From positions 42,904,001-42,968,000 of the forward strand of contig NC_043001.1 in assembly GCF_006345805.1 (NCBI RefSeq): 64,000 bases of DNA, in the 5' to 3' direction. Shown one piece after another: positions 31,561 through 60,203 of the stretch; position 1 is the stretch's first letter, and each line of letters starts with the position of its first letter. Made by a program: the position numbers and the translations under genes. The notes under the pieces were generated by a model. That model was not told the DNA's origin and searched no databases. It saw only the letters and a program-made list of their open reading frames with translations. Origin of the DNA: Octopus sinensis. Its lineage: Eukaryota.

Positions 31561-34060
31561 GAAGACAATATTTTCTAGCATTATATACATATTAAAATTA
31601 TAGCAGCTAAATTTTCCTTAAATCGCATTTTACTATCTTCAGAATGAGATCGCATTTTAGCATCTTCAGAATGAGAAAAGCACTCTGGAAAATGTCCTAC
31701 GAATTCCTATAAGAACAGGATGATCATGGTAGGAATACTTGTGATCATAGCTCTACTTAGGGCTGTTTATAGGATTAAGAACAAGAACAAAGCAACTAAA
31801 TTGTATGCATTCTAAATATTCATCTTCTGAATTCTTCTCACTTATAATGTCTTGACTCCATAATTATTATTCCTATTAGAAGTAATTTATGTACTTACCT
31901 TCAAAGCCTTATTCAACCATTCTGTTATTCATTCATGTGGGAGAGTTTTCCCATAGCAATGTAAGCCATCAAGTTTGCACAAAAAAACCCTCTTTTTCTT
32001 TGCTTACTCTACTGCCATTTCAGCAAGGCAAGAGGTATCAGGTATTTTCCTAAAGGTACAATGCTGTATCACTGATGGAGTAATAGCATTGATCACAAAA
32101 TATAAGATCACAAATTTGTAAAGGTAAGGTGTAATTGATTATAAATCTAGTATACTATTGATACTTATTTTATTAAATTCAAAGGGTGGGAAGGTATAGT
32201 AAACTCCAAACTTCACCAGGGACACAGTCCTTATCAGTGTTCAGAAAACAGAGCCTACTGTTTATGAATCAATCTTTTTCACTTGAGTACATTTACCCAT
32301 CAAGATATGCTATGGTAACTTATCATACTTCAGCATGGTTTTTCTTATACATAGTTTGAATCACTATGTTAAAGAATAATTAAAAATAACACAAGCATTT
32401 TGTTTGTATTGATAATTTTTTATAACTTTGACATTACTTGTTTAAATTTGTTGATTTTGGCAGTTTCAGATTTGAATAGGTGTTTTGATTGTTTTATGTT
32501 GATAAAATTTTTTCCATCTATATTAACTGCTGTAATTAAGGTATCATGACAAAGGAAAAACAAAATGTTGATGGCAAGGTTTACTTCCATGACTTTTGAA
32601 GTGTAGGCTCTCTAAATTTAACCATTATAATTGTTTGTTATGTATAACACTTGTACATAATGTAATTTATATAATGCCGTCCGAAAATGAATCACAATTT
32701 GTGTAATATCAGCTATACTATCACCTTTAGTACAATTGTGATTTATCTAATGATGACATGTGTGAAATTATCTTGAGGATCCATTATACATACGATTCAG
32801 CTTTTAAAATAACTGTCATGTATGCTAAACTACTGGTACATCACATTGCTAGTTTGATGAGAACTTAATCAGAGGCAATTAAGAATAGAAATTCTTTGAT
32901 TTGCAATTCCAATTAATTACAATTTATTTGTCTTTACTGAATTTTGACATAAGGATATCAAATGACTAGTAATTAATGTAAAATTGATATTTAATAATAA
33001 ACATTAAGGTGATATTTCAGTGTGGCCAATATTCAATTAATCAGAAGTTATTGTATGCTCTTCTTGATTATAAATTGGAACAACAGTTAAATCAGATGTT
33101 GAAGTTATGTAAGATAACACAAAGTCATATTTATTAAGCTATTCTGTTTTCATATCAATCTCAATAGATAGTGTTCTGTTAGGTATTTATCTTTATAATT
33201 TCTAAATGTACAAATGACAATGAACATGTCTAGAAAACAAAATGTACTCTGTTCATTAGTATTAAATAACTACTGTCATTCTTAATGCTACCATCCATTC
33301 ACGAGAACTTTCATCATTTCATTACCTTCATCATCAGCATCATGAGTGCTATCATCATGGTTGTTTTTGTCGTTGTCATTGTTGCTTGTCACTTTATTAT
33401 CATCAACATCATCCCCTCACCACCACCTTTGTCAATTTAACATCTGCTTTTTCAAGTAATTAATGAGAAAAGAGAGAGAGAAAGGTTCAGATACTGGTAG
33501 AGAGTTAGCAGTATATTAGCAAAAGATGCAGTGCATGAAACTTACAAAGCATCCAGGCAGATTGCAAAGAAAGAGGTAGCAAAGGTACAGGAGGAACATA
33601 AGTAAATTTTCAGAGAATGTATGGATTCATTGCAATTGGTGCACTGTATCTAACTTCTGCCTTCACTTTTCTGACAGGGTTCAATATTTCTCGGTGCTGA
33701 CACTTCAAACATATCATAGAAGACTTCCATTGGTATTACCCTTCATTCTGCTGTATGTCTCATTTTTAACTGGCTAAGGTGTCTCTCATGATCCATGTAA
33801 GTTCAATGAGCATAGTTTGGAGTCAAGTGAAGTTCATGTTAGTTCACAGTGAAGTCGGAAGGTGTCAGTTGGTTAGTTCACAAGGAGAATTGATTGTTGG
33901 TGTGTAAAGAGATTTGTTAGTTCATTATATTGTTTTTACTGTTGTCTGGTTATCTTATTTACTGTATGTAGCAACAATATATATATATATACACACATAC
34001 ACACACATGCACACACATACTAACACAAACACACACACACACATATATACATAAAAAAAA

Positions 34061-34299
34061 GTAAAGTTCCTTCCCTAGTTATATAGACTCATAGGGCTGG
34101 TTTCCATGGCATATATATTCCTCACCTGGATGTGACGCTAGTCTGTCTCAGGATTACTCATTTTTGCCAGCTGAGTGGACAGGAACAACATGAAATGAAA
34201 TGTTTTCCTCAGTAACACAACACATTGCCCGGTCCAGGAATCAAAACCTCAATCTTACGATAATGAGTCCATCATCTTAACCACTAAGCCATGCGTCTC
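34061..34299 (-). mobile_element. tRNA-derived SINE with a family-B-like tail
   Basis: Minus-strand head GAGACGCATGGCTTAGTGGTTAAG. The tail resembles the 30207 copy (…CCAGGTGAGGAA…GAAACCAGCCCTATGAG…GAAGGAAC). Confidence 0.75.
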
Positions 34300-34336
34300 T
34301 CTCTATACATACATGCACACACACGCACACACACAC

Positions 34337-34371
<35 letters not shown>

Positions 34372-34374
<3 letters not shown>

Positions 34375-35965
34375 TGACCTTATCTTCACGACTGGTGGTT
34401 TCATTGGACATATTGGGCAGCATCTGGGTGTCTTCCATGGTGTACATGGTGACCAGGGAATTGGTTCCTAAAATGAGGAGGGAATAAGGCTACTGGCGTT
34501 CTGTGGTGTGAATAACCTAATGATCTGCAACACTAACTTCAAGAAGACAGTCACTCACATAATAACCTACCAAATGGGTGACCACACCAGCCAGATTGAT
34601 TACAAAGTGAGATACCTGGTTGCTCATAAATGCAAAGGTCTTCTCCAATGAAGAATGTACCCCTCAGTATAGATTAGTAATTAGTAGCTTCAAGCTTGAA
34701 GGATTCCAAAAGCAGACCTCTCTGGAAAAGAAGGATTTGGAAGCTTAAGGATATTTTAAATTGTCAGAGATTTAGAGGCATCTTAATTGAAGCATTTCAT
34801 AGGGAGGAGGAATCAGACATGTAACCTAGAGGACAGCTGGAAGTTCCTACAGGACAACTTACTGAGTGTCACAAAACAAATCTATGGCTGGTGCAAAGTC
34901 CCAACCAGACCTAGGGTGATATGATGGTGGAACAGTGTAGTAGACAGAGCCATTAGAGTGAAGAAACTAGAAGAATGGTAGTAGCAGGAACTATATCAGA
35001 TAGCTAGATGACAGGTATACTTAGCCTGGGGAGAAGTAGAAAGGAAGAAGTCTGCCAATGTTTTGTGGTATGAGGACCAGAAGCTTGAGATGTTTTGGAT
35101 TGCAAGACAGTGTGTCAGAGAAAGCCATGATGTTGTAGAAGAGAAGTGTGTTCTCATGGATGATGGCTCACTTGCAGTTAGTGGTTCTATAAAGAAAGAG
35201 GCTTAGAAATGCCACTAGAAGGAGAGTCTGCCTAATGTGAACCCAAGAGAAGGACCAGTTATCTGAATCAAGTGTAGCTTAGTAGATAAAGCAATTAAGG
35301 ATATGAAGACAGGAAAAAAACCGCAGCCCATCAGGAATCACTGCTGAGATGCTTAAAATAACTGGCGGGGTGAGATATGGTTTGGTCACCCATATAGTTA
35401 ATCAGGTTGTCCATGAGGGAGTCGTGCCCAATGACTAGTGTAGCAGCATTATAGTCAGCTGCTACAAAGGTAAAGGTGACACTTTAGACAGAAATAACTT
35501 CAGAGGTATCAAACTACTGGACCAGGTGATGAAAGTTACAGAAACGGTCATAGCTCAATTAATTAGGAAGAGAGTGTATATGCAGTTTGGTTTTGTGCCA
35601 GGAAAAAGCATTACTGATGCTATCTTTCTGATGAGGCAACTACAGGAGAAGTATTTAGCCCAAAATAAACCTTTGTACCTGGCTTTTGTTGTCCTGGAGA
35701 AAGCTTTTGACTGGGTTCCCCACTTAATTATCTGGTGGGCAATGTGGAAGCTAGGGATAAATGAGTAGTTAATGAGAGATGTACAAGCCATGTACAAGAA
35801 TGCTGTAGTTAAGTGAAAGTTGGCAATGAGTATAACAAGGAACTTAGTGTACAGGTAGTTCACTAAGGATTGGTTCTCAGCCCCTCTTGCTTATCATAGT
35901 CCTCCAGGCCACAAAGAGGAAGTTAAGACTGGCTGCCCTTGGAAGCTCCCTTCTGCAGACAAATT
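34372..35965 (+). mobile_element. RTE-clade LINE fragment (APE endonuclease plus RT)
   Basis: CNTNFKK, QIDY, NNFRGIKLLDQVMKV, QFGFVPG, EKAFDWVP and GCPW remnants. Confidence 0.9.
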
Positions 35966-36219
35966 TATCCTCTTTCCTTTACTGGGACTATTTGTGATGC
36001 TCCTAGTTAATATCCAAATATAAACGCTTCATCCAAATGTAATTTAAGTATTAAAAATTTTTCTATCTAATGAATTTCTAATAGGAAATTCTTTACACGT
36101 CTGTCTAATATGTAAATCTTTGTAATTTCCATTAGCAAATGAAACACATGTAATGGCAAATAGCTAATACCAAAAAATTTTCTCCTGCCTGTTTTGTTAT
36201 GTGTGTGTATGTGTATTCT

Positions 36220-36253
<34 letters not shown>

Positions 36254-36256
36254 TAT

Positions 36257-36653
36257 GTAGGTACAGGTATGACTTTGTGGTAAGAAGCTTGCTTCCCAAC
36301 CACATGGTTCAGGGTTCAGTCCCACTGCATGGCACCTTGGGCAAGTGTCTTCTACTACAGCCTCAGGCCAACCAAAACCTTGTGAGTGAATTTGGTAGAC
36401 AGAAACTGAAAGAAGCATGTCATATATATGTGTGTGTGTGTCTCTTTATGTCTGTGTTTGTCCCCAACAACTGTTGTTGGTATGTTTATGTCTCCGTAAC
36501 TTAGCGGTTTGGCAAAAGAGGTTGATAGAATGAGCCCTAGATTTTAAAAAATAAGTTCTAGGGTTGATTGTTCTACTAAATCCCTTTAAGGCAGTGCTCC
36601 AGCATGGCCACAGTCAAATGTCTAAAACAAATGAAAGATAAAAAGATAAAAGA
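36257..36653 (+). mobile_element. SINE family C
   Basis: Same head-microsatellite-tail layout as 14348-14743. Confidence 0.85.
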
Positions 36654-36689
36654 TATATAGTTCACTGTTCTGTTAAGGTAAGATCAACA

Positions 36690-37010
36690 AAAAAGTACTC
36701 CATTCAGTGAGAGGGTGGTGTCTTCCAGTGTGCCAAAAGAAATTTGTCCATATGCTTGCATTTGCTGAACATTTTGGGTCTGGAATAGTGTGGTGGAATT
36801 CTTGGATTGAAAAAGAATGTGCAATATTTCAGTTATGCATAAGTTACATTTCTTAGACCCATTTACATATAGCATGGATTTCATTACAATTCTCTATAAG
36901 TGGTGTGTTGTTGGTCTTCAAACCCCATATGTGGCTAACCAACTTAGTGGCTTTACTTTTGTCAATGTGCTGGAAGGAAGACTTGTGTCTTTTGAAATTG
37001 CCTTTGCATA
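36690..37010 (-). mobile_element. Penelope-like GIY-YIG fragment
   Basis: Minus-strand remnants HKSSFQH..KATKLVSHIWGLK and YVNGSKKCNLCITE, with frameshifts. Confidence 0.75.
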
Positions 37011-38084
37011 AACTGATCTAATTTTTCTTTTCAGTTACGTTATCTTGAAGCATTACTGTGACTTCTGCCTCATAGATGACAGAGTTTATCATACATGCCT
37101 GATCAAATGGGTAAGCTTCAAGGTCTAGACAGTTACAACTAGGATTACACTCTTAATGATGCTTATGAGTGACGATGTTCCCCATATTGAGAAAGCAGCT
37201 ATATGACATTTTTATTGTGCATCTATTAAAAAAATCTTCCTGTATTTATGGTTTACTAGGAAATGCTTGTCTAAAAGAGACAAGAATTTCTTGTCTTTAT
37301 TAGCATTTAGAGTAGCGATGGGGGTCCATTTTTAAGCTTCATATTTTTACTTGAAGTTTTGTAATATATCTTATCTTTGAAACTTCTGTTAGCTAGAGTA
37401 TTGTTATAGTAGGGGGCTGCAACCTCCTTTTTTTTTCATTTTTTCTTGTGATTTTTAATGTACAAGTGTCCTGGTTTTCAGATAGAACTGTGCTCAGAGC
37501 CTGAGAATTGCTTGGAGACACAAAGTACATTATAAAAACCTGTCTAGCCTCATGTTTTCATTGTAACAAATTATTAGTAGCTCCTATCTTTATACAGTGT
37601 ACATTAAACAATGTACACACATACACACATACACAAATATTTACACTCCTCCACAAAAGCATGTCTGGCCATCAAATTCATTATCCAAAGCTAGGGAAAA
37701 TATTAACTCACTTCTTAGTCTTTCTATCACCACTTTCCAAAAAATATCTGCTTCAATAGGTTTTGTTTGGCTCATGCAAGCTTGTAAAAGTGGACATCCA
37801 GCCAATGATGGCAGTGATAATTATGTGTTTGTTATAAAAATAATATATATGTAATTTATATAAATTATATACATTATATAAATTACACTGGGTAACAGGG
37901 ATCTGTTGTCTGATGTTGGAGACATGTTTCCTACTAATTCTGGGGTGCTGATTTCAAAAATGAAATCCATTTTGCTCTATCACATTAAGATTTTCCACAA
38001 ACTTAGATATCTGTTTTTCAACATTTCTGGTATTGTTACCATATCTAAGGATAGATTTGACATCATCAAATGTGAACCCATGTA

Positions 38085-40388
38085 TGGAGCAGGCTGCAAA
38101 GAGAGAGACTTGGAGATGCCACTATGAAAGGTTGAAATGAAGAGAATGAATGGGAGAAAGAGAGTTTGGCCAAAGGTCAACCCAACAGAGGGACCAGCTA
38201 TCTGAATTGACAGTACCTTGATTGATAAAGCAATTAAGGGTAAGAAGACAAGGAAAGCCCCCTGCCCATCAGGAATCACCCCAGAGATGCTTCAAATATC
38301 TGGTGGTGTAGGCTATAGTCTAGTCACCCATATAGTCAGTCAGGTGATACATGAAGGAGTCATACCCAATGACTGGTGTAGCAGCACCATAGTCAACTGC
38401 TACAAAGGTAAAGGCGATGCATTAGATACAAATAATTACAGAGGTATTAAATTGTTGGATCAGGTGATGAAAGTCACAGATAGGGTCATAGCCCAACTAA
38501 TTAGGGGGAGAGTTAGTTTAGACAAGATGTAGTTTGGGTTAGTGCCAGGGAAAAGTACTATTGATGTTATATTTCTGATAAGACAGCTGCAGGAGAAATA
38601 CCTAGCCAAAGACAAACCTCTGTACTTGGCTTTCATTGACACCGATCCCTTATCTGGTGGTCAATGTGGAAACTAGGGATAGATGAGTGGTTATTGAGAG
38701 CTGTACAAGCCATGTACAGGGATGCTGTCAGTAAGTTGAAGGTTGGCAACAAGTATAGTGAAGAATTCCAGGTTGGGGTAGGGGTCCACCAAGGATCAGT
38801 CCTCAGCCCCCTCTTATTCATCATAGCCCTCTAGGCAATAACAGAGGAATTCAAGACAGGATGCACCTGGGAGCTCCTCTATGCTGATTACTTTGCTCTA
38901 ATAGCTGAATCGCTACCAGAACTAGAGGAGAAGTTTCAGGTGTGGAAGCAAGGATTAGAATTGAAGGGCCTTAGAGTCAACTTAGCTAAAACCAAAGTCT
39001 TAATAAGTAGGAAGGCAGGCAAATCCCAAATCCCTTCAGGTAGATGGCCTTGTTCAATCTGTAGAAAAGGATAGGTAGACACTCCTTAAGATGTATCCAG
39101 TGTAAGCTAAGGACACATAAGAGGTGCAGCAATATCAAAGGGAAGCTAACTGGGAAAATAATTTTTGTGTGTAGATGATGCACAGGGGCAATAAACACTG
39201 AAAATGTGCAGAAAACAGCTTCTGTCACATTGTAGCAGGAAAAAATAGAAGTAGTTGATAACTTCTGTTACCTAGGTTACCAAGTCAGTAGCTGGGGTGG
39301 ATGTTCTGAGAGCGTAGCTGCTAGAATAAGAATATCCTAAGCAAAGTTCAGAGCTCCTACATCTGCTGGTAACAAAAGCCTCTCGCTCAGAGTGAAAGGT
39401 AGATTTATGATGCATGTGTGTGAACAGCCATGCTACACAGCAGTGAAACATGGGCTGTGACTGCTGAAGACATGTGTAAGCAAGAAATGATGCTAGTATG
39501 CTCTGCTGGATGTGTAATGTCAGTGTGCATACATGACAGAGTGTAAGCGCCCTGATAGAAAAGTTGGACATAAGAAGCATCAGATGTGGTGTACAAGAGA
39601 GACAACTGTGCTGTTATGGTCATGTGTTGTGTATGGATGAGGACAGCTGTGTGAAAAAGTGTTGCATCCTAATAGTGGAGGGAACCTGTGGAAGAGGTAG
39701 ACCCAGGAATACATAGGATGAGGTGGGGAAGAATGACCTTTGAAAGTTGGGCCTCATGGAGGCAATGATAAGCAACCAAGACCTTTGGAGATATGCTGTG
39801 CTTGAGAAGACCCAGCTAGCCAAGTGAGATGTAGCCATGGCCTATGCCAGTATCGCATAACTGGCCCATTTAAGTGTACCCTTCAATCATTGAAGACCTG
39901 TTGAGTCAAGTGAAATTATTGTCATGGCTGATGCCAGTATTGCCTGACTGGCATGTAAAAAGCACCATTCATGCATGGTTGATGCCAGTCCCACCAGACT
40001 GACTCCCATGCCAGTGGCATGTAAAAAGCACCATATGAGTGTGGTCAATGCTGGTGTCGCCTGACTGTTCCTGTGTGGGTAGCACATAAAAAGTACCATT
40101 CGAGCGTGGTTGATGCCAGTGCCGCCTGATTGGCTTCCATACTGGTGGCACGTAAAAAGCACGATTCGACTTTGGTCGATGCCAGTATTCCTGACTGGTC
40201 TCTGTGCCAGTAGCACATAAAAAGCACCCACTACACTCTCAGAGTGGATGGCATTTGGAAAGGCATCCAGCTGTAGAAACATTGCTAGATCAGATTAGAG
40301 CCTGGTGCAGCCTTCTGGCTTGCCAGACCTCAGTTAAACCATCCAACCCAATCCAGCATGGAAAGCGGATGTTAAACTGATGATGATG
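38085..40388 (+). mobile_element. RTE-clade LINE, 5'-truncated, with complete 3' end
   Basis: KAPCPSGITPEML, NYRGIKLLDQVMKV, HQGSVLSPLLF and LLYADY (YADD mutated). 3'UTR with ~60-bp repeats and TGATGATG tail. Confidence 0.9.
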
Positions 40389-41394
40389 ATATATATTTCA
40401 TTCTTTTACTTGTTTCAATCATTTGACCACAGCCATGCTGGAGCACCGCCTTTAGTCAAACATATGTTTTATATATGCCTTATTTATGTATATAGCAAAC
40501 GAAAGGGGATCCAGGTATCCACACTAACCTCTCCATTATTTTGCTTGTTTTATGTGTGTGCATTTATTTATGCCTGCATGTATGTTCTTCTGCAACTCTA
40601 CCACAGAAGCTGCTATAAGAACAAGGTTAACGTATAAAAATCTTAGCTTAGTATATAAAGGGCCCAAATATAACCAATCCTAAATTCTAGTATTATAGTC
40701 CTAAGTACTTCAATAGATGTGTCTGTACACTGAATTCCTTACTGAAGTCACTACCAACGAAATCTAACTGCATCCTAAATTTTTTTCAAACCATTTATCT
40801 ATCACTAGTTTCTTTAACACTTAGACTGAGGGTGACTTTTGAAATACTTTTTCAAATTAAGAATACATAATAGAGTAGCTTCTTCTGGGATGAAATTCTC
40901 TCTTGATGTTGCATCACATAAAAACATGCTATTTATGATTCTGTGTCTTTGAATAAGCCCAAACAATATCTTGCCTTTGTTATTCCCATCCGGAATTAAC
41001 TTTGCTGAAGCTCTTTTTGTTACTTTCATGATTCAGTCCTTGAGTTTAACACTTGTGGAATTTCCTTCTCTCTGGTTCCTTTCCATTGCCTTTGTGGTAA
41101 TTACCATTCATGCTGTTATACCAGTCATTGGAAGTAGCTCCTTCCTGTACTACCTGATTAATCCTAGCAAACAAGATAGTTTCTCTAGTGTCACTGACCT
41201 CTTAAAAATAGCTATCAAGTCTTCCTCAAATCACACCATATCATCTTAAAAATTGGACACATTGGATATTTCATGTATACAAGGAAATACAGGATGGTTG
41301 TAGCTAAAATATTTTTGATTGTAAACCACTCAGATAAGCCTAATATTTAATAAATCACTTTGATAGCCTGATACTTAATAATGGTTTCCAATTT

Positions 41395-41580
41395 TGCCAC
41401 AAGGGCAACAATTTTGGAGGAGGGGATGAGTTGATTACATCAACCCCAGTGTTTAACTGGTATTTATTTTATCGACCTTGAAATGTAAGAGGGGCAAAAT
41501 GGCTCAGAATGTAAGAGGGGCAAAATGTCACTAAGTATTTTGCCCAGCATGCTAATGATTTTGCCAGCTCACCGCCTTAG
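41395..41580 (-). mobile_element. Degraded SINE (family D)
   Basis: Block GATTACATCAACCCCAGTGTTTAACTGGTATTTATTTTATCGACC. Related pieces at ~3540-3620, ~32100-32210 and ~59490-59575. Confidence 0.6.
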
Positions 41581-42257
41581 CCAAATACTTAATAAAAACT
41601 ACTTTCCATGTCTTTAGCTTCTTCTTACTATCTATCAATTGCTGGTTTCTGTGTTGGTTAGAAAAACAAATGAAAAATTGTTTCAAATATAACAAATAAA
41701 GTACATTGGATGAAATCTAAGATTTATCTTATAATTAAAATATAAATTATCCCTTGATTTCAAATTTTAAATATCAAATGAGTTAACTTTAACTTTTACT
41801 CATCTTTAATTCAAGAGAAATTAGACTTTCTCAACTTTACTCTCATATTATATACTATTTACTTTACTTAAATACTATTACATATTGTCTTTGTTTCTTC
41901 TTTCATAGACACTTTTGTTGAGATACTATGTCTTTAACAAGACTAAATTTCCTCATCAATTCTCTTAATGTCTATTTTTATTAATTTCAGCTACCCTTAC
42001 ATTTTACCCCAGTTTTTGTCAGATTTCAAAATAATTAAGTTTCTGCCACTACACATATTTTGTCATCAGTTTTTACCTCATTCTGTGAATTTTGTCTTTG
42101 AACAAAATATCTGATGCTCTGTATAATTTTTAGCTATTCTCAAAATAAACTTTAGTCTTGAAATTCAATTTGTACAAAGAATGAATCATACTTATTTTAC
42201 ATCATATGAACTTAGAGTGTGCTTCTCCTTTGAATCTGTGATTTATTGATGATGATG

Positions 42258-42260
42258 ATG

Positions 42261-42305
<45 letters not shown>

Positions 42306-42444
42306 TTATTATATAGAAGGAGCTTCTACAGGACTAGAACTGTTATTATATAGAAGGAGCTTCTACAATATAATAAATTAATTTTACTCTGCTATGTATT
42401 GAGTACCTTACTTACTGTGGTTAACCCCGAATCAACCCGGGACC

Positions 42445-42525
<81 letters not shown>

Positions 42526-42549
42526 GTATATATATGTGTGTGTGTGTAT

Positions 42550-42594
<45 letters not shown>

Positions 42595-42614
42595 ATATAT
42601 ATATATATATATAT
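42258..42614. repeat. Compound (TA)n/(TG)n microsatellite with an internal TATAGAAGGAGCTTCTACA duplication
   Basis: Directly visible. Confidence 0.9.
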
Positions 42615-43149
42615 GAACAAGAAGTTTGCAGCTGTTGAATGACTTCTATATGGTGTAGTTAGAAATATACTTTAGAGATTATTTGAAAAGTAACTGAACT
42701 CAGTTTCCATTATTTTGTGAGAAAAGTCTTTTGTTTTAAAATTCTATGCATACTTTTATCCAGACACTTTGCAGTCTTATGTACTAAAGCCTGATAAATT
42801 CTAAGTTAGATACTTGATTAAGGCACCTAATTTAGAGGTTATTTATTGTTTCATAAGTTCAGTTACTTTTCCAGTAACCTCTAAAGTATCTTTCTAACTA
42901 CACCACATGAAAGTCATTCAACAAAGTTCTTGTTCATATATATTGTCAGTAAATCACAAACCCAAAAGAGAAGCACACTCTAAGTTATAGAGCAGTAGAG
43001 TAATTAGATAAAGATAGTTATAGTTGGTCTATGAGTCATAGGCCATTGGCCATTAGGGTCTAAAAAGATGCTGTAAAGCTAAGCGCTTTATGGACATGAC
43101 ATCCAGGGTAACCCCATAGACCACCCATAACCATCTTTATCTAATTATA

Positions 43150-43312
43150 TATCATCATCATCATCAGTTAATGTCCATGTTCCATGCTAGCATGGGTGGG
43201 AAGGTATCACAAGAGCTGGCTGGGCCAAAACCTGCACCAGACTTCTTTGACTGTTTTGGCAGGGTTTTTACAGCTGGATGCCCTTCCTAACACCAATCAT
43301 TCAGCAGAGTGG
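43150..43312 (-). mobile_element. RTE tail fragment just downstream of NKY
   Basis: (CAT)n...CCATGCTAGCATGGG...CAGCTGGATGCCCTTCCTAACACCAA. Confidence 0.7.
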
Positions 43313-43397
43313 ACATATATATACATGTAACATATTTACATCAAGAAGGATTCTTACATTGGACAAAAATACAAAATTGTTACTTTCTCAAAATTGT

Positions 43398-43589
43398 TTT
43401 ATTATACTATCTTTGATGTGATCATATTTTCCAGCTTTTGTTATTAGAAATAAGTTTTATTACCATGTGTATTTGCTTTAAATTTTTTTCTGTTACATTT
43501 AATAATGATACTAATATAAAACTAAGAACATCACTATACACCCATAATAAGAATCAAACAAATTGCTTTAAAGATATTGTAAATTTATT
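43398..43589 (-). promoter_or_regulatory. Candidate polyadenylation signals for the NKY transcript
   Basis: AATAAA on the minus strand at 43584-43589, 43456-43461 and 43398-43403, downstream of the stop codon. The DNA is AT-rich, so chance occurrence is likely for some. Confidence 0.35.
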
Positions 43590-43700
43590 TCTATGTTAAA
43601 TCCAAAAAGTATGTGTCATTGTAAGAAACAAGAGAAATACAGAGTTATCCATTGTTGGCAGTTACTTAAAGATTCGTGTTATTCCAAGACGATTTCATAT

Positions 43701-44039
43701 TTAACCATATCTCAGAATGGTACTTCCACGATTTTCAGAACTTCTAGCATTGGAAGGCTCTGGGACAGGAACATAACCATGGGATGGCATCCATATCCAA
43801 TTTGGTTCTCTTTTGAGTCCTCTCTGGGTTCGTATATAATATGATGGCATTCGACCTTGATATCCACTTGGTGGTGCCATAAGTGCATTGTCTCGTGTTG
43901 CTACTGCAGCTCTGGTGATCAATGATAGTAAGTTCTTGTCAGAATTTTCATGATTCCCTTCCCAAATTTCTCCAGACAGTATCACTCCAATACAACAGAA
44001 GATGAAAATTATTAATTGGCTGCTGAAATACTGCTTCAT
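43701..44039 (-). CDS. NKY: NKY-2-type neuropeptide precursor (112 aa, single coding exon)
   Basis: ATG in AAC-ATG context. Hydrophobic signal peptide MKQYFSSQLIIFIFCCIGVILSG and one dibasic KR site. Predicted 34-aa peptide EPNWIWMPSHGYVPVPEPSNARSSENRGSTILRY followed by Gly-stop (amidation donor). The WIWMPxxGYVxVP and I-x-RY-amide motifs match annelid/mollusc NKY-2 as I recall it. Confidence 0.85.
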   Translation of the reverse strand: MKQYFSSQLIIFIFCCIGVILSGEIWEGNHENSDKNLLSLITRAAVATRDNALMAPPSGYQGRMPSYYIRTQRGLKREPNWIWMPSHGYVPVPEPSNARSSENRGSTILRYG

Positions 44040-44057
44040 GTTGTATTCTGATAAGAA

Positions 44058-44082
44058 CTGAAAATATCACAAGAAAAAAAAA
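44058..44082 (-). promoter_or_regulatory. 3' splice acceptor upstream of the NKY start codon
   Basis: Minus strand reads ...tttttttcttgtgatattttCAG then 18 nt of 5'UTR then ATG. This implies at least one upstream non-coding exon at higher coordinates. Confidence 0.6.
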
Positions 44083-45249
44083 TGTTATTAGTTTATTGGT
44101 TTTCATTAAATATTGTACTGTTATGTTTTAAACAAAACATTTCATTAGGAAAAATTGACTTCAGATATCATTTTCATGAGAGAATGAAAGAAAATGAAGA
44201 ATGGGAGAGAGCTATTACAGGTCTCTTAGTTGGGAAAGGGATCAAGAATAATTACAATGTCAATGTCTTGAGCAGAGATACATTTAGATGAATATACTGT
44301 AACTGGTGCTGTTAGTTCAGAGCAACAGAAAATTTAGCAATCGCCAGTTGTGTTGGAAGGAGGAGTAATTAAGACAATTTATTGTGTAGATTTAGTAATC
44401 TTTGATTGATCAGATATATGACACTAATAGTTGAAGGACTGTGCATGACTCATAGATCTATTGTTTCAGACGTTTTGCTTCTACCTTACTGCACACTTCA
44501 AAATACAGTGGGTAACTGTGTAACGGTATATACATGTGTACACTCTCCTCCACTGTCTAACCTACACCTGTATATCTGCAGATTTTAGTGTTGGCTAAAG
44601 TAATGAGGTAAGATGAACTCCATCAAAGCACAATTCAAGTTGTGCAAATGTGTAAAGGCTCCTTTATCAGCTTGGTTAAGAGGAGTTGTGTGTATTAAAC
44701 TCACCAACAATAATAATTTCAGGCACATGTGTATTGAGATCTTCTCAAAGCAGTTTAAGATATAATTGAACAAGTGTTAGGAGCTGAAGGGGTTCATAAG
44801 GTTGCAGAGAGAGCAGCATTTAGAGGAATGCTAATAACAGCTGATATAAATGTTGGTTGGTTGGTTGATAGATTTTTTCCAGTCATACTTTACATTGTAT
44901 ACAGAGATGGAGGGAGAGAGAGAGTAAAAGGGAGATACAAAGAGAGTTAACATAAGTTAAAGAGAAACATTGAAATTGACAAGCTCTGGTAGGGGTGGTA
45001 GTAAAGATGATAAAAGTTATGTTATCACCAAATATCTAACAAATGCATGTACACTCTCGCATACATGAAATCCTCTCTGTCTGTCTGTCTCTCTCTCTCA
45101 CACACACACAAATTTACATAGAGACATAATTGTAGTATAAGTTCAGGATAAATTTTGCAAAGAGTTTGTAGGGGCAGGTAAAGAAGCAGATTTACATAGC
45201 CATTTATATCGTCATCATTTTTATGTCTACTTCAACACACTTGCGGAAA

Positions 45250-46434
45250 TTTTATTCATCAAAGAAAGTATCATTACGATCAACACATTTTTTCTGAGTT
45301 ACAATTTTGTTTATTCCAGTAACATAAAAATCTGGAGTTCTTGAGCTGATGTGTACTATGAATGTTCTTTCAACATCAGTTTCATTTTTGAACTCCTCAC
45401 GCAGGAAACCATTAAGGCGCTTGAAAAAGTGGTAGTTGGTAGGAGAAAGGTGTGGGGAATAAGCTGGATGGGGAAAAACTTTGTAGCCAAGTTCCTCAAC
45501 TTTTGGAGCATCATTAGTGAAATGTGTGGTGGAGCATTGTCATGAAGAATGATTGACCCTTTTTTATTGGCCAGTCTGGGACGGAGGAGTAGCAGTTTTT
45601 CTTTTGTTTTGGCAATTTCATGGCAATATGTTTCTGCAATAATGGTTTTTCCTGGTTTTAAGAAGTTATAGTGGATGAGTCCAGCAGTACATCACCAAAC
45701 AGCCACCATTACCTTCTTTTTGAAGAGCTCGGGTTTAGGGAAGGTTTTCGGTGCTTCATTTTGGTCCAAGTACTGCAAAGAACATTTTTTATTGTACAGA
45801 ATCCACTTTTCATCACAGGTTACAATATGGTTGAGAAATGGAGAAAATGTAACAAGCAAATTTCAAATCTGCACATTTTCTGATTTTCATTCAAATCCTT
45901 GGTACCCATTTGTCAAACTTTTTTGATTTTCCAATTGCATACAAATGGTTGCAGGCAGTTTTCTGGCTAACTTGAAGTTCTTTTGCCAGTTCTTGAGTTT
46001 TACTTGGATATTTCTCAATGACAGTCTTTAATTGACTGTCATCAATGACAGATTGGTGTCCACTACGCTCATGATCTTCAAGGCTCAGGTCTCCATTGCA
46101 ATATCATTTAAGCCATTTTTGAGCTGACCACTCACTGGTCATTTCCTCACAAAACGTTTTGTTGATATTGTGAGCAGTTCCAGCTTCTTTACATCCTTTT
46201 TTGAAGGTGAATAGCAAAATTGCTCAAATATCGCACTTTGACAGTTCCATTTCATATTATTGTAACAATGGTGGAAAAAAAAATCAATGTTAATTTATTG
46301 ATGCATTTGGGCAAGTTTATATCTGTATTACCAGACAATTGCAAAAAGATGTTTTTAAAAAAATCAAAACTCTGCAAAAATCTGGTACAAATTCTTCACG
46401 GTTCATAATGTTGCTTAGTTTTTACTCAACCTGA
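45250..46434 (-). mobile_element. Degraded Hsmar1/cecropia-like mariner
   Basis: Minus-strand remnants IVTCDEKW and HPAYSPHLSPTNYHFFKRLNGFL. TIR-like TCAGGTTGAGTAAAAAC at 46434. The 3' region resembles the Hsmar1 end. Confidence 0.8.
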
Positions 46435-46722
46435 TATATAGATCACCCCTTAACATATGTATTGGGAAAATCAAACAATCCAAGCACACAATATAAAATT
46501 TTCATTCCAAAACTTTTGTGTCATTTTGTTTTTCTAAGATTTAAAAAATAAAAGTAGATAACTTTTAAGAACATCTTTCTTCAAATATCTGTTTGTCCAT
46601 CTATCCATATCATGTATATGATATGATTAGATATTCTATATATATATATGTACAGATATATAATATCTGTGTGTTGTGCATATATATATATAATTATATC
46701 TATATAATTATAAGTTAGAGTA

Positions 46723-47243
46723 CTGAGAAATAGCACCAACATGCTAGAAATAGACGTCAAAATGACTCTAAAACCACACGAGGCACTCCTTTAGCACTGG
46801 TAGAAAGCAAAGGAATGAATAAAAAACATTTAGCAAAGTCTTTTTAGAGGTTGATTCTAGATCAAACGATTCCTTATTTATGTATACATATTTTATATTT
46901 ATTCACTCTGATCATTATATTCACTGTGATGTAATTTTGATCAAAAATGCACATGATGAGATGAATAATTAGATTGGCCTCATATATATGTGTCAATATA
47001 TGTATATGTATGGTATGTATATATATTTGCATTTATGTACTATTTTGGTATATTCTACTGATAAAGGCAGAGTAATTTTCATTGCTAAACCAGAAATCGT
47101 TAGATCTAGAATTAACCTCTAAAAAGACTTCGCTAAATCTCTTTTTTTCATTCTTTCACTTTCTATCAGTGCTAAAGGAGAGCATTATGTGGTTTCAGAG
47201 TCATTTTGACATCTATTTCTAGCATGTTGGGGTTGTTTCACAG
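46723..47243. mobile_element. Long-TIR (fold-back) MITE
   Basis: ~150-bp imperfect inverted repeats (46723-~46870 and ~47094-47243), CTG...CAG ends, flanked by TA on both sides. Confidence 0.8.
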
Positions 47244-47310
47244 TAGCCACTGATAAGATTGTTCTTTTTATAATGATTTTATCTTTATTTATGTATATAT
47301 GTGTGTGTAT

Positions 47311-47347
<37 letters not shown>

Positions 47348-47429
47348 GTATTTTTTTTTTATATATAGTTTCAGCTCACGAGTTGTGGGCATGCTGGGGC
47401 ACCGCCATTTGGTGTTGCTACATAATTTT

Positions 47430-49075
47430 ACTTCACGAATACTTTTTAGGAATTGACATTTGGTCCATGAGGGAGCTTGATGCTGCTGCCCTCATCTGCA
47501 CCTCCTGCCGTGAAGTTGGCTCATCTGAGACACTTGACAGTAAGAGGTCCTGCTTTATTTTGAAGACACCTACATCCACCCCATGCAGGTCTCTCAGGTC
47601 CTTCAGGAGGATATTGAAGAGCTGTGGACCTCTGAAGCCCAGGCTATTGCAGTATCTTCTATATCTTGATGGCAAATTAGGAGTCCTTGGCACTATGCAG
47701 TGGTGCCCAGTTCTAGTATTTGTGTAACTCTCATTGCCAAAGTTTGGGACAAGTCCTTCCAGGATCTTCCAGATGTATATTATAGCATATCTTTCTTGCC
47801 TATGCTCTAAGGAATAGAGTCTTAATCTCTTGAGTCTTTCCTGGTAGCTTATATGCTGCATAGATGCTATCTTCTTCACGTAGCTTTGTGGGATTGTCTC
47901 AAGTTATAAGATTAATTTGTTACTAGTTGGTGACCATAGCTGAGAGCAGTAGTCAAAGTGGCTTAGGACAAGTGTCCTCCAGAGGTTTCCTGATTTCTCA
48001 TTTTAAAAGTTCTAACAATCCATCCAGTCAGCCACCTGCATTTCATTGCCAATTTAGCAACATGCACATGGAAGGATGCATCATTACTCATGTAAATGCC
48101 CAGGTCTCACACTGACTGTGCCTCTGGGATTGCAATCTCTCCAGATCCAGTGTATTTAATGGGTATTGCATTTAGTTTTGCATGCTGAAAGCACAAGGCT
48201 TGAAACTTTTCAGCATTGAAATGCATGCTATTCTTTTCAGCCCACTTGTATATTTTGTCCAGCTCACATTGCAGGTGCATAATGTCTTCAGGGTTCTGTA
48301 TTACCTGTGATACTTTTGTCAGGCAGCAAGTCATTTTCTTCAAGGAAGGCAATTAATTTCCTTCTGACTATTCGTTCCATAACCTTGCTGATGTGCGAGG
48401 TCAGAGAGATAGGTTTGTAGTTCTTGGCCTCCGCTCTGCTACCTTCTTTATGAATAGGACATATTTTACCCTCCTTCAGTTTTCTTAGAAGTTTGCCAGT
48501 TGCAAGGAAGCACTGAAAGAGGGACTACAGTGGTCTTGCTAGGACACGCTTACATACTTTTAGAAGGATTGCTGTGAATCCATCTGGGCCAGTAGCTGAG
48601 TTTAGGTTCATTTCATCTATAGCCCTTATTACATCATCTTCCTTTATATTGCTTCTGTTTTTATATCTACAGTAGTAAAAAAGTCAGTTGGATTGTTGAC
48701 TTGAAAGTGCCCAAGGGGTGGAGTGAAAATACTTTTGAATTGCTCATTTAGTATTTCACTTATCCTCATTGGGATTCCTGTGAGTGTACCATCTTTTTAG
48801 AGGAGTGGCTCTATCCTACAGTGCACTGAAGCTGTTTCTTTGGCAAACTTGTTGTAAGCTCTGAGGAAATCAAGAGTGCTGATATGGGATTGTATAAGAG
48901 CATAGAAGCGTGTAAACTCCTGCTTCTTTCGTTCTATCTGTGCTAATGTTCTGGTGTAACCATTGCTCTTCAGCACAGCTGTGATTATGTCGTTTGGGTT
49001 ATCTCCTTCAGCACAGTGCCAGGCTCTCTAAAAGAATGCCAATTCCTTGCTCCTCCAAGTTCTGGACATTTTTAT
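47430..49075 (-). mobile_element. CR1/L2-clade LINE fragment (RT to C-terminus)
   Basis: LQCELDKIYKWAEKNSMHFNAEKFQ; SYQERLKRLRLYSLEHRQERYAIIYIWKI; NYKPISLTSHISK near 48400. Confidence 0.9.
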
Positions 49076-49353
49076 GGATATTTTATTTATTTATCTATCT
49101 ATTTATTTTTAATAATTTAACAGTGTGATGGAGGGTAGTGAAGAATTAGAGAAAGAAAGTGTGTCTATATATTTAGAGAAATTGAGCAGCTGAGAGAAGA
49201 GTGTGAGAGAGAGAGAGAGAGAGAGAGATTGTTCATGTCTATATATTTAGGAATATTGAGAGGCTGAGAAAAGAAATATGGTGTGACAGAGAGAAGTGAA
49301 GAGACAGAGAAAGAGTCATGATGGAGAGATGTAAAGAGACAGTGAGAGAAAGA

Positions 49354-49360
<7 letters not shown>

Positions 49361-49400
<40 letters not shown>

Positions 49401-49424
49401 CACATACATACATACAAAGCACAT

Positions 49425-49484
<60 letters not shown>
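49361..49484. repeat. (TA)n/(CA)n microsatellite
   Basis: Directly visible. Confidence 0.95.
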
Positions 49485-49488
<4 letters not shown>

Positions 49489-50904
49489 TAGGGAGTTTGA
49501 GGTGCTGAGAGAAGGATGGTGTGATGGAGAAAAGTAAAGAAAAGGAGAAAGGGATAGTGTGTGTCTCTATGTATTTATAGAGAGGAAATAGAGAGAGAGA
49601 GAAAAAGAGAAAGCAGTAGAAGAGAGATTAAGGGTTTGAGAGAAGAATTATGGGATGATGGAGTGAAGTAAAGAGATAGAGAGAGAGAGAGAAGTTATGC
49701 AAACTCTTGAAAAGGATTCGACTTGGATAGGGAAAAATAAATAAAGGAACAAATAAATATATACCTATCTGTAACTACAGAAATTCTCTTAAATCAGGAG
49801 TAATGAAAGTTAAACCTCTCTACAATAATCAATAATCTAGTAAGTCAAACGCAAAACAGAGAAAAGACCTTATGTAGATTTAACCTTCTAATTTTCCCTA
49901 ATAATAGCCTTCAATAAAAGACAGAAAATACACAGAGATACTTATCTAGTTCTTCCAAAGAGATGGGTATTTCCAAGGCAGTGGAAGATTTTGAACTTCT
50001 TTTCAAGTTATGCTGATACCATGTGCTGCTCAATACATTTGTTTACATTTTGTATATTCGTAAGGGCTTTCCATTTTTCTGTTTTTCCCTTCTATATATT
50101 CCAGATGGTTTTTCATTAAATTTGTCTTGTTATGTTTTCACTCAAAAGTTATTAAGATAGTGGTTCTTTTTTTTTTTTTTCCCGATCGAAAATCACAGTT
50201 ATTTTAGAAATTTCGTAAAACCCACATGTTGTTACCTGCAATGTTTATAATTCGTACATTCGCAAAAGATACTTCCTGCTTAATATATTTCACTTTATAT
50301 TTCCTCAAGTGTATTCTTTATCATTCAGGAAGAGATTCAAGGCTTTCTTGGGTATCATTTATAATAGAATTCGCAGCTTTTCAGAAATTTTTTGATGATA
50401 TTCTAGGCGCTTAGAAACACACGTGTTGATCAGAGGCTGCAATATGTATGTATATATATTTATGTATATATGTATGTACATATGTATGTGTATATATGTA
50501 TATATATATACGTTTGTATATATGTATGTACATATATATATATATTATATATATATATATGTATGTATTTGTTTTACATTGTTGCATATTCATATGCAGC
50601 GATTTATGCCTTATTGGTACAATCTCATTAGGGCATATAAATATGACATTATTTGAAGAGGAATTTTCCCCTCAATTAGTTTGGATTAGACTTGCCATTA
50701 ATAGTAGTAATAGTAATAACAGCAGCAGCAGCAGTAGTAGTAGTAGTGGTAGTAAACTCTGAACATTCCACAAGATGTTTTTCTCAACTGTTTATTTGGG
50801 TGAAATTCAGTAGCATCAGCAGCAGTCATTGTTGAGGTCAGCAATTGTTCCTGGATAGGCTGGGAGGGGTTAATTATAGAATATTTATTTTTTGATTGAT
50901 TTAA

Positions 50905-52022
50905 CCCTTTCGTTAATATATTTCTGACCAAAATACACCCCTCATGAGTTTCAATTAAATTCTAAAATAATCATGAATCTAGGCTTGTTTCATTAAATAA
51001 CTGTAACTATTTTACTTATCAACATATTAATGTGATATTTGGAACATAATTAAAGAAAGGGTTCTTAATCAATTCTATTACATAACTTTTGTCTCAAAGT
51101 GACTTTAATTACAGGTAAATCCAGATAAATTGAGCAAAAGGTAAAAATATTAAAATTTTAAATTGAGCAAAAAGTAAAAATATTAAAATTTTGTTTAAAC
51201 ATCACCATGAGAAAATGAATCATCAGCTAATATTCAAATGGGTATGCAACAAAATTTTGATAAAGAAGAATTGTACACATCACTATATCATCAGTTGAAT
51301 TTAATGCACAACAGGTGTACCATAAAGGTGGAATAAACTGAAATATTGGAATCCACTGTAAATTTGACCGAACTAAAGAAATCGGTCAAAAAATAATATA
51401 CGGCCCTGGTTATGGTATGGAAATGATAAATTCCAGACTACATCGTTCCCTAGGCTATGCTGACTAACATTATTTTCCCTGTATAAAAACTAAATCCACG
51501 CAGTACCCAGTATTTACTTCACAAATTTACCGAAATTTGAACCCCCATTTTGTGTTTGTTTACAATCTGCGTAAGTTTGTTTCCGCATTGATCGCTTCAA
51601 ACAATAACTTCCAGACCACATCATACCCTAAGCCATGCTGACTAACATAAGTTTCCCTGTATAAAAACTAAATCCACAACAGTACCCAGTATTTGTTTCA
51701 CAAATTTTCCAATTCGGAATCAATGCTTGATAACATGAAACTCCTATCCATTTTCAAAGTTGAAGAAAAATCGATGCCGAAAAAAATGTGGAAAGAAATC
51801 TCCCAAAATTCAGGGAATTAAAATTACACGTCGATCGTTGTACAAAACTGTAGATTAACTGTTTACGAAGCATAATCACGTGTTTTCACGAATGTACTAA
51901 AGAGATTTGCTCTGATATTCTCATTTAAATATGAATAGGTAAATTCGTGCAGGTTTGGGCGGTTTGGTCACATTAACCAAAATTTTTTTCGGGCGGCTTT
52001 GGGCGGTTTGGTAATGAAAGGG
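50905..52022. mobile_element. Non-autonomous piggyBac-like element
   Basis: TTAA TSD (50901-04, 52023-26). TIRs CCCTTTCGTTA / TAATGAAAGGG. Contains internal direct repeats and no transposase ORF. Confidence 0.8.
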
Positions 52023-53055
52023 TTAACATACTTTATAGTCACAAGGCATATTGATGGATTTCAAAGTTGATTATATTATTTGAATTTTGTGAAGGTTATT
52101 AATAGTAGTAGTGAATAATTGCAAATCTGTATGAATCATGTGGTTATTAAAAGGAAGTATTCAGTTGTATTTTAAATTCTTCTAACTTATTATTTTTTAC
52201 TTTTATTGTTTTAAAGTCTTTTTAGGTTAAATTATATATAAAAGGTTGGCGAAGGTAAAGATCATGGACTGCACCCCTTTTGCGATTATTTTGTTTTCTT
52301 TTTTACAGGAACACACTATATCGAGGGCAGAGATTCTGAATCTGTAAAAAAATCTGTTTTTCAAAATTTAAATCCTCCCTTCGCCCCTCCCCTCATCCCA
52401 CCCCACTCACCTAAATTTCTAAAATTTTCACTTTTTAAAAAAAAATTTAGGGGCAAAATACATAGAAAAATATGGAGATTATGATTCTGAAAAAAAATAA
52501 ATTCTGTAAAATTTCAATTTTTCAAAAACAAAACAAAATGAAATAAGCAACCCCCGTCCCCTCCGCTCTATGACAAGAAGTAAAATTAAAATGCTTTCTC
52601 TACCAATGTTTCATGAACATGTTGTGGTTGAGGGTCTTTTGGAATTAAGAAAACATTGTTTGTGTAAGCAATTAAAACTTCTTTCTTATCTAGTGTTAAC
52701 TAATTTATTTTCTGAAGTAAATATCTGGTATAATTCCTCCAGACATAAATTGCATCTTTTGTCCCGAATCTTATAAGGTTTCACAGTACTAATATTTTTC
52801 CATACTTGATATTTTCATTCTTCAGCAACCATATGAGTTTACTAAGACCTGTTGAAAATTTTCTAGTATTATTTTAAAACAAACTTTCATGGCTTGCTAT
52901 TCTTTGTTTTATAAAGCATGAACTAGCACCTATATTGCAATATTTATTTCTATCAGTTATCACTACACATCTTGGCATTGTTCTGGCCTTACCCATGACC
53001 CTTTATGCAATATATACTACACAATGCATCACAGTAACTATTCCATTATAATGTC

Positions 53056-53059
<4 letters not shown>

Positions 53060-53129
<70 letters not shown>

Positions 53130-53253
53130 GTATGTACACACACACATATATAATATGTGTGCTTTTATGTGTGTGTGTGTATGTATCATCATCATCATTT
53201 ATTGTCTGCTTTCCATGCTGCCATGGGTTGGACTAATATAATATCTGTGTGTG

Positions 53254-53300
<47 letters not shown>

Positions 53301-53310
53301 ACACACACAC
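53060..53310. repeat. Compound (TA)n/(CA)n/(TG)n microsatellite
   Basis: Directly visible. Confidence 0.9.
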
Positions 53311-53330
53311 AATATGTATTAGTCTTATGT

Positions 53331-53661
53331 GAAGGCGCATGGCTCAGTGGTTAGAGCGTCGAGCTTACGATTGGGAGGTTTTGTGTTCGAATCCCCGACC
53401 TTGCTGCATGTTGTGTTCTTGAGCAAGACACTTTATTTCACGTTGCTGCAATTCCCTCAGCTGTAGAAATGAGTTGCGATGTCACAGGTGCCGAGCTGTA
53501 TCGGCCTTTGCCTTTCCTTTGGATAACACTGGTGGCGTGAAGAGAGGCCGGTATGCATGGGCGACTGCTGGTCTTCCATAAACAACCTTGTCCGGACTTG
53601 TGCCTGGGAGGGTAACTTTCTAGGTGCAATCCCATGGTCAGTCATGACCGAAGGGGGTCTC
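53331..53661 (+). mobile_element. tRNA-derived SINE (family A), well-preserved copy
   Basis: A box TGGCTCAGTGG, B box GTTCGAATCC; body shared with 3133-3467. Confidence 0.9.
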
Positions 53662-54027
53662 AGCAGATTAGTCTTATATATATATATATGTAATAAAATA
53701 TAGTCACATGCATTGCTGTGTGATTGATATGCTTGCTATTCAGCCACATGGTTGTGGGTTCAGTCCCTATCTGTAGCACCTCATGCAAGTGTCTTCTAAT
53801 ATAGCCCTGGGCCAACCAAATTCTTGTGAGCGGATTTGGTAGATGTAAATTGAAAGAAATCTGATATGTGTGTATGTGTCTATCCTTGTCTTGACACTGC
53901 ATGATAAATGAGTCATTGTCACACAAGTAATGTCATTTATTTTCAATATTCTTTGTAAACATGTTTGATTATGATGAAATATGACCTTGCTTGGAAACAG
54001 TTAAGAGATAGTAACAGGAAGGTCATC

Positions 54028-54074
<47 letters not shown>

Positions 54075-54093
54075 CACACACAAATATAATATA

Positions 54094-54445: not shown

Positions 54446-54474
54446 TGTGAGAAGAAATTATTGAATCACCATCC

Positions 54475-54511
<37 letters not shown>

Positions 54512-60092: not shown

Positions 60093-60160
60093 TATATATG
60101 TGTGTGTGTGTGTGTATGTGTGTGTATATATGTGTGTATACATATATATGTACATATATA

Positions 60161-60203
<43 letters not shown>

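Follow-up and report, generated by a model that had tools for sequence, protein, structure and literature searches.

An NKY-2 neuropeptide gene very probably nested antisense within intron 4 of the selenoprotein S gene in octopods

Introduction

Nesting of one gene antisense within an intron of another is common in animal genomes. In the pair proposed here, as in other host-nested antisense pairs of animals, the guest would lie wholly within one host intron, on the opposite strand and with an unrelated function, and the guest (NKY-2) is equipped with a putative promoter and a poly(A) signal of its own. The pair differs from them in that the guest itself has an 18-kb intron, that the guest has been multiplied into an array in Octopus, with some or all copies in one intron, and that Octopus and Argonauta both retain the pair. 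Full-text literature searches found no paper on a SELENOS-NKY link and no description of the nest.

The host, selenoprotein S (SELENOS/VIMP; PF06936), is an ER-membrane ERAD selenoprotein. The octopod protein shares with this family the single N-terminal transmembrane segment, the coiled-coil and the Gly-rich tail with (Y/H)xPLxG. The human protein ends in GG-U-G-stop, and selenocysteine (Sec) is likewise penultimate in the GG-U-G-stop end of Argonauta. However, intron 4 appears to have grown to about 150 kb or more in Octopus (28 kb in Argonauta), and it hosts neuropeptide genes.

The neuropeptide KY precursors of lophotrochozoans comprise NKY-1 and NKY-2, and the core of NKY-2 reads G[YF]WIWMPAQG (De Oliveira et al. 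2019, PMC6425005). The NKY peptide synthesized for Crassostrea gigas is GGIWIWMPAQGYVSVPRDEVGGASNKGSSSNLLRY-NH2, ending ...NLLRY-NH2 (bioRxiv 10.1101/712687). Like the NKY-2 subgroup of these two reports, the octopus precursor has a predicted signal peptide, one long C-terminal peptide behind a basic site, a WIWMPxxGYV core and an LRY-Gly amidation end, the peptide being of 34 aa in octopus and 35 aa in oyster. However, where the consensus core is G[YF]WIWMPAQG, octopus has NWIWMPSHG; the peptide released at KR would begin with Glu and not with the name-giving Lys, and several tandem copies are present in octopus. No cephalopod NKY peptide or receptor data were found in the literature searched.

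Results and Discussion

SELENOS exons 3 and 4

The window, that is, the whole 64,000-nt stretch of DNA analysed here, holds an internal piece of SELENOS on the plus strand, in which exons 3 and 4 are followed by the initial 38 kb of intron 4, a very long one. Exon 3 (4295..4401, +, 107 nt) encodes xNQKCQQTFEAMQKAREKMQRENDAKTELYLEQVKK between the flanks tttatag and gtaagt, and exon 4 (26039..26101, +, 63 nt) encodes REEKKRQMKLENLEGKLSSTS between the acceptor cctccag and the donor gtaagt. Both exons were 100% identical to two octopus SelS proteins, P0004 and P0012, exon 3 to aa 79-114 and exon 4 to aa 115-135. The first-pass annotation had placed a SELENOS exon with a donor site 17.6 kb upstream of the NKY-2 gene. 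Both the exon and its assignment to SELENOS were borne out, with the boundary at TCT/gtaagt in phase 0 and the last nucleotide at 26101, not 26102, at a distance of 17.6 kb from the NKY-2 stop codon. The ortholog in Argonauta hians is exon 4 at 34250-34312 of the locus sequence L005.

To the joined exon 3+4 peptide (56 aa), an exhaustive HMMER search returned one protein at 100% identity, P0004 (CAI9722528.1, O. vulgaris, annotated 'seleno S-like', 154 aa). A word-index protein search with the same peptide returned no match; since the exhaustive search succeeded, the null was taken as a tool miss, and negatives of the word-index search on short Lys/Glu-rich queries are unreliable. The O. sinensis protein P0012 (XP_029636185.1, 179 aa) is identical to window exons 3-4 over aa 79-135 and spans PF06936 positions 3-192. 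The PF06936 scores were 68.3 bits for P0012, 70.2 for the Argonauta model P0006 and 59.6 for P0004, at a Pfam cut-off of 29.8. In tblastn, a human SELENOS query had two weak, collinear matches on the plus strand of the window, in which human aa 80-107 aligned to exon 3 at E 0.014.

Moreover, a 300-bp public sequence (L007; GCA_016612955.1, JAENPV010000154.1) is spliced octopus SELENOS cDNA that runs from exon 1 through exon 3 and 2 nt into exon 4. Its positions 192-298 are identical to window exon 3 and confirm both boundaries of that exon. SELENOS is in this way represented by spliced cDNA over this part, and NKY-2 by gene models. The whole of L007 (1-300) sits in a Campylobacter fetus subsp. 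venerealis assembly, where it is annotated as a hypothetical protein, evidently through cross-contamination.

The NKY-2 precursor

On the minus strand, the ORF at 43701..44039 encodes a prepropeptide of 112 aa, with a signal peptide predicted at about aa 1-23, a KR site at 76-77 and a Gly-stop end. The length of the ORF alone proves little, because about 2 stop-free runs of 112 codons are expected in 64 kb, read in six frames, at 35% GC. The NKY-2 assignment was made from the core motif, the alignment with C. gigas NKY and the hydrophobic N-terminus. The window core PNWIWMPSHG matches the consensus at WIWMP and the final G, with A replaced by S and Q by H; the relative P0003 has WIWMPAQG exactly. 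The predicted octopus peptide was 47% identical to C. gigas NKY, with a pairwise E of 8e-10 (BLASTP). At the N-terminus, a hydrophobic core at residues 8-22 (11-residue Kyte-Doolittle mean up to 3.35) is followed by a polar stretch. The precursor reads ...LKR/EPNWIWMPSHGYVPVP...STILRYG-stop, in which Tyr followed by the Gly amidation signal is present at the C-terminus. The diagnostic Lys is found in octopus only within the K76-R77 site, and the peptide after dibasic cleavage would start with Glu. A search for a Pfam family for this protein found none.

Orthologs of the ORF were also found in two further octopuses, O. vulgaris and O. bimaculoides, and in Argonauta. At the amino acid level it is 96% identical to its O. 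vulgaris relative and 87% to that of Argonauta hians, and a relative encoded on an ENA contig has 61% identity. The Nei-Gojobori dN/dS was 0.157 in the comparison with Argonauta and 0.146 in that with the Octopus paralog, and values of about 0.15 point to purifying selection on the ORF. We therefore accept the 112-aa ORF, on sequence grounds, as an NKY-2 precursor, and the first-pass annotation of a 112-aa minus-strand NKY-2 prepropeptide stood in full. Removal of the signal peptide, prohormone-convertase cleavage after K76-R77 and amidation via the terminal Gly would be the expected processing steps. The product would be a 34-residue peptide, EPNWIWMPSHGYVPVPEPSNARSSENRGSTILRY-amide, cut from a precursor that closes with Gly-stop; it would end in RY-amide and carry the NKY-2 core WIWMPSHGYVPVP.

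Gene structure and putative promoter of NKY-2

The precursor appears to be encoded by a complete two-exon gene on the minus strand, inside SELENOS intron 4. Exon 2 (43565..44057, -) comprises an 18-nt 5'UTR segment, the whole CDS and the 3'UTR; its 3' end is approximate, and the poly(A) signal AATAAA is located at 43589-43584, about 110 nt past the stop codon. As the first-pass annotation had stated, a splice acceptor lies 18 nt before the ATG (ttttcag with a polypyrimidine tract, AG at 44059-44058). This acceptor sequence is common to Argonauta, the O. vulgaris copy encoding P0001 and a divergent O. vulgaris copy, and the O. vulgaris models P0001 and P0008 join ...LQS/FLS(E/K)YN-M at it. Intron 1 (44058..62342, -; junction ...HLQS/FLSEYNM in P0008) is 18.3 kb long in the window, 25.1 kb in O. 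vulgaris (GCA_951406725.2) and about 7.2 kb in Argonauta.

The non-coding exon 1 was placed at 62343..62450 (-). It matched aa 63-91 of P0008 (...SLIFESLHLQS/) at 100% in tblastn, and its donor, CA/GTAAGT at 62343, is kept in the four gene copies of alignment A1. Upstream of it, a conserved block at 62451..63321 (-) forms the putative NKY-2 promoter, with an invariant TATATAAA at 62482-62475, a GGGGGCGG box and an AAGTAG..ACAAGAGGTGGG element. In blastn, the region 62232-63321 was 76% identical over 1.17 kb to the upstream block of the P0001 copy, and in Argonauta it matched a block that precedes the gene by 7.2 kb, with 70% identity over 0.6 kb. A further copy of the promoter/exon 1 block lies upstream of the third, divergent O. 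vulgaris paralog. In the four-way alignment A1, the TATA element TATATAAA, the GGGGGCGG box and the further upstream element were all conserved. NKY-2 therefore probably has a TATA-box promoter of its own at ~62.45-63.3 kb. With the 5' end of exon 1 set ~25-30 nt downstream of the TATA box, we infer that transcription starts near 62450 and that exon 1 is non-coding. The additional N-terminal residues of P0001 (151 aa) and P0008 (209 aa) are then translated 5'UTR, and P0008 is additionally spliced from the coding exon of the upstream paralog. Within the O. sinensis SELENOS range, the annotation on record lists no NKY-2 gene.

Probable nesting of NKY-2 within SELENOS

The first-pass annotation had proposed that a SELENOS intron spans NKY-2, the two genes forming a sense-antisense nest. 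In the paper nautilus Argonauta hians, the annotated SelS gene (P0006, PF06936) overruns NKY-2 on the opposite strand. Mapping of P0006 placed SELENOS exons 1-6 at L005 10001-10093, 13914-14051, 29608-29715, 34250-34312, 62326-62388 and 64218-64298. The Argonauta NKY-2 lies at L005 44274-44612 (-), in the 28-kb intron 4, between the end of exon 4 (34312) and the start of exon 5 (62326). Since all six exons were mapped and NKY-2 is antisense in intron 4, the nest is directly visible in this species. The strand relation is the same in the window, where the SELENOS exons are on the plus strand and NKY-2 on the minus strand. The gene identities, the exon boundaries, the strand relations and the nesting in Argonauta are accordingly matters of direct observation, and the nesting in Octopus itself is supported through these relatives. 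Within 10 kb on either side of P0003 (L003), a more distant NKY-2 relative, no SELENOS exons were found.

The first-pass annotation had further held that SELENOS needs one or more C-terminal exons with a GGUG end. This agrees with Argonauta, where exons 5-6 complete the protein and exon 6 ends GGA TGA GGT TAA, that is, GG-Sec-Gly-stop, with the Sec codon penultimate. The tails of the 179-aa models are canonical, ...DGHRPLMGHGGGSTYRPPRRSNTRGG in P0012 (O. sinensis) and ...DGYHPLMGNSGGSSYRPQRRSNTGGG in P0006 (Argonauta), and P0012 stops at ...TRGG, as expected if UGA comes next. The peptides for locating exons 5 and 6 by tblastn are NSQEKSPEKPKPKNKNVSDG and HRPLMGHGGGSTYRPPRRSNTRGG. With the C-termini of P0006 and P0012 as tblastn queries, no match to exon 5 or 6 was found in the window, and hence none between exon 4 and NKY-2, which bears out the earlier statement that the window holds no later SelS-homologous exon; an identical 20-24-aa exon would score far over the thresholds used.

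The same exon 5/6 peptides found no match in the O. vulgaris SELENOS locus (L004), in OX597818.1 24,305,291-24,380,885 (L006, which reaches 45 kb past the window end) or in OX597818.1 24,221,734-24,276,354 (L001). Exon 4 of O. vulgaris lies at about 24,388,220 on OX597818.1, and the 83 kb downstream of it, NKY-2 included, hold no SELENOS exon 5 or 6. Therefore, intron 4 of O. vulgaris is at least 83 kb long and contains NKY-2. The sequence only brackets O. vulgaris exons 5-6, which would fall at 24.276-24.305 Mb or below 24.2217 Mb on OX597818.1. In O. sinensis, the gene range of P0012 is 225,257 bp and exons 1-4 span 67 kb, so that intron 4 would measure ~155 kb; its upstream ADH-like neighbour is common to O. 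vulgaris. Degenerate DNA patterns of SELENOS exons 3 and 4 had no match in L002, which is intron 4 sequence except at one edge, where it includes the final 39 nt of exon 4.

In the window, the first 37.9 kb of intron 4 (26102..64000, +) are rich in transposon remnants and continue beyond the window end. Judging by the 225-kb O. sinensis range, and by the 83 kb that follow exon 4 in O. vulgaris and hold neither exon 5 nor exon 6, the true exons 5 and 6 of the Octopus gene (...GHRPLMGHGGGSTYRPPRRSNTRGG-Sec-Gly) and the SECIS would be located past the window end. Taken together, the Argonauta exon map, the octopus guest position (exon 4 upstream, ending at 26101, with no exon 5 in the 83 kb downstream) and the 225-kb range make it very probable that the two-exon NKY-2 gene is nested antisense in SELENOS intron 4, with exons 5-6 and the SECIS beyond the window. 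The proposed nest thereby gained support from the relatives, being common to Octopus and Argonauta hians.

No SECIS was found in the window, either with the Rfam gathering scan, which gave no matches at all, or among the best 150 of the 161 matches of a permissive scan. This absence is expected if the SELENOS 3'UTR lies elsewhere. The SELENOS 3'UTR of Argonauta had no Rfam SECIS match. A hand scan of that 3'UTR gave a sole, weak SECIS-like candidate at L005 65462-65508, ~1.2 kb past the stop codon. It has ATGA, a 9-10-bp helix (a good upper helix), an AA motif and GA, with a poor lower helix, and the Rfam models miss it.

Two further SelS-like matches were examined. A motif scan picked up GGQCGS-stop-G-stop at 35746 (+), which was rejected because it lies inside a degenerate reverse-transcriptase ORF. 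A tblastn match to human SELENOS, KTYRGGGYN at 62548-62522 (-), was treated as chance because it is on the wrong strand and within the conserved NKY-2 promoter block.

Alternative readings of the locus

The annotation of O. vulgaris would allow the two genes to be convergent neighbours rather than nested. The terminal coding exon of CAI9722528.1 (P0004) lies at 41909..41968 (+; TLLLRYYVFNKTKFPHQFS-stop, 100% tblastn match), and if SELENOS ended there as a 154-aa Sec-less protein, NKY-2 would stand tail-to-tail 1.7 kb downstream, the distance from the end of this exon to the NKY-2 stop codon. In favour of this, 41909-41965 matches P0004 at 100%, the acceptor of the exon (ttcttctttcatag) is good and the exon compatible in phase, and an AATAAA follows about 180 nt past its stop. 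However, the 19 C-terminal residues of P0004 have no SelS similarity (its Pfam match covers profile positions 3-123 of 192), and this tail carries neither a G-rich stretch nor Sec. Furthermore, the exon has no blastn match in Argonauta and is absent from the 179-aa models of O. sinensis and Argonauta. The near-identical O. sinensis protein has a canonical C-terminus and a 225-kb gene range, and in Argonauta the canonical exons 5-6 lie past NKY-2. We consider the convergent arrangement highly improbable; at best, such a product would be a minor alternative isoform alongside the nested one. The exon is probably a prediction artefact, or at most marks a minor Sec-less isoform. The first-pass annotation had counted a SELENOS terminal exon within 26102-43700 as evidence against the nest; formally, the CAI9722528.1 annotation does place one there, but that exon is not SelS-like and is Sec-less, and the nested reading is retained.

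A different doubt concerns whether the window copy is the expressed one, as O. vulgaris has a tandem NKY-2-like array in one orientation, with two intact copies, one divergent copy and two fragments. The intact copies are the window type at OX597818.1 24,370,547-24,370,885 and the P0001/P0007 copy at 24,266,016-24,266,354 (L001 44283-44621). The divergent copy at 24,315,291 (L006 10001-10270) reads MKQYLSNQ...RRNGKEPKFTDPCFENFEVSHPFPHKKH-stop and has neither the WIWMP core nor the RYG end, and the fragments at 24,330,817 and 24,333,974 (L006 25527-25586 and 28684-28917) contain stop codons. A separate TATA/exon 1 block accompanies each intact copy and the divergent one. All copies in L006 fall within the exon-free 83 kb; whether the P0001 copy also lies inside intron 4 depends on the location of exons 5-6. 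Both intact types also occur in O. bimaculoides (P0009, P0010), and Argonauta has one copy at the fetched locus. Since dS is 0.13 between the two intact Octopus paralogs and 0.44 to Argonauta, the duplication is specific to the Octopus lineage.

The window copy could then be a silent duplicate, the expressed gene being the paralog ~105 kb away (P0001/P0007). In favour of this, the array includes at least two degenerate copies and a divergent one, the window copy is known from sequence alone, and its exact 112-aa product is not called as a gene on record. Nevertheless, the ORF is intact, its low dN/dS holds both against the paralog (0.146) and against Argonauta (0.157), and the copy has kept its acceptor, poly(A) signal and TATA/exon 1 block. 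Both paralog types are intact in O. bimaculoides (P0009, P0010) as well. The residues that distinguish the window copy from P0001 are I13, E24, G73, A97 and N102, and at two of the three positions differing between the Octopus types (E24, G73) it is the window copy, not the paralog, that equals the Argonauta gene. A silent window copy is therefore very unlikely.

Relation between host and guest

With NKY-2 nested in intron 4, the SELENOS primary transcript would run antisense across the whole NKY-2 gene. Overlap of mature exons is not evident, the nearest annotated plus-strand exon ending about 1.4-1.7 kb from the 3' end of NKY-2. The pair could be an old, selectively maintained arrangement of cephalopods or molluscs, in which transcription of SELENOS, a broadly expressed ER-stress gene, through the NKY-2 promoter tunes or silences NKY-2 outside particular neurons and Octopus-specific NKY-2 multiplication within the intron drove its growth from 28 to about 150 kb, but we regard this as unlikely. 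The sequence makes simple co-location, without sign of functional coupling, the most likely relation, and we infer that the two genes are regulated independently; transcriptional interference between them is possible but speculative. SELENOS/NKY-2 is an ordinary nested-gene case, and nothing here suggests a new mechanism. It offers a clean example, conserved across octopods, of a host intron that contains a neuropeptide gene with a separate putative promoter, with lineage-specific tandem expansion, and transcriptional interference in the very long introns of cephalopods could be studied on it.

Public annotation of the two genes

The main value of this analysis is in correcting the octopod annotation, as counts of the cephalopod selenoproteome and neuropeptidome made from the current models go wrong. 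Of the public octopod protein models, three are either truncated or continue through an intron. In the O. bimaculoides SelS (P0005, A0A0L8HY53), translation runs past the donor of exon 4 into intron sequence (window 26102-26160), and the O. vulgaris CAI9722528.1 ends in the non-homologous exon at window 41909-41968. On the NKY-2 side, CAI9722527.1 (209 aa) is a chimera in which the 5'UTR exon (window 62343-62429) links two NKY-2 copies, and CAI9722525.1 translates 5'UTR.

Repeats and other features of the window

Transposon remnants were noted at 19828-20403 (+), 24226-24660 (-), 35300-35960 (+), 47433-47879 (-) and 54146-54400 (+). They are mariner/Tc1-like transposase and LINE-type reverse-transcriptase fragments, one of which gave the false GS-TGA-G-stop at 35746. 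An interspersed repeat family of ~200-300 bp occurs on both strands (6795-7047, 40146-40390, 55093-55281, 63602-63815 and others), and numerous copies of it, 75-88% identical, are found in the O. vulgaris loci. Sub-threshold Rfam matches to mir-297, mir-466 and mir-3149 (regions 53240-53316 and 60094-60620) were discarded as (TA)n/(CA)n microsatellites. Against O. vulgaris OX597818.1, the window is 96-99.9% identical with multi-kb indels, as in NKY-2 intron 1 (window 44058-62342, 18.3 kb, vs L006 40150-65239, 25.1 kb). The window thus represents a different haplotype or individual, or the sister species O. sinensis. An Rfam MIR6024 match at 22717-22817 scored on both strands; the region is therefore a near-perfect palindromic hairpin, and it may be a MITE.
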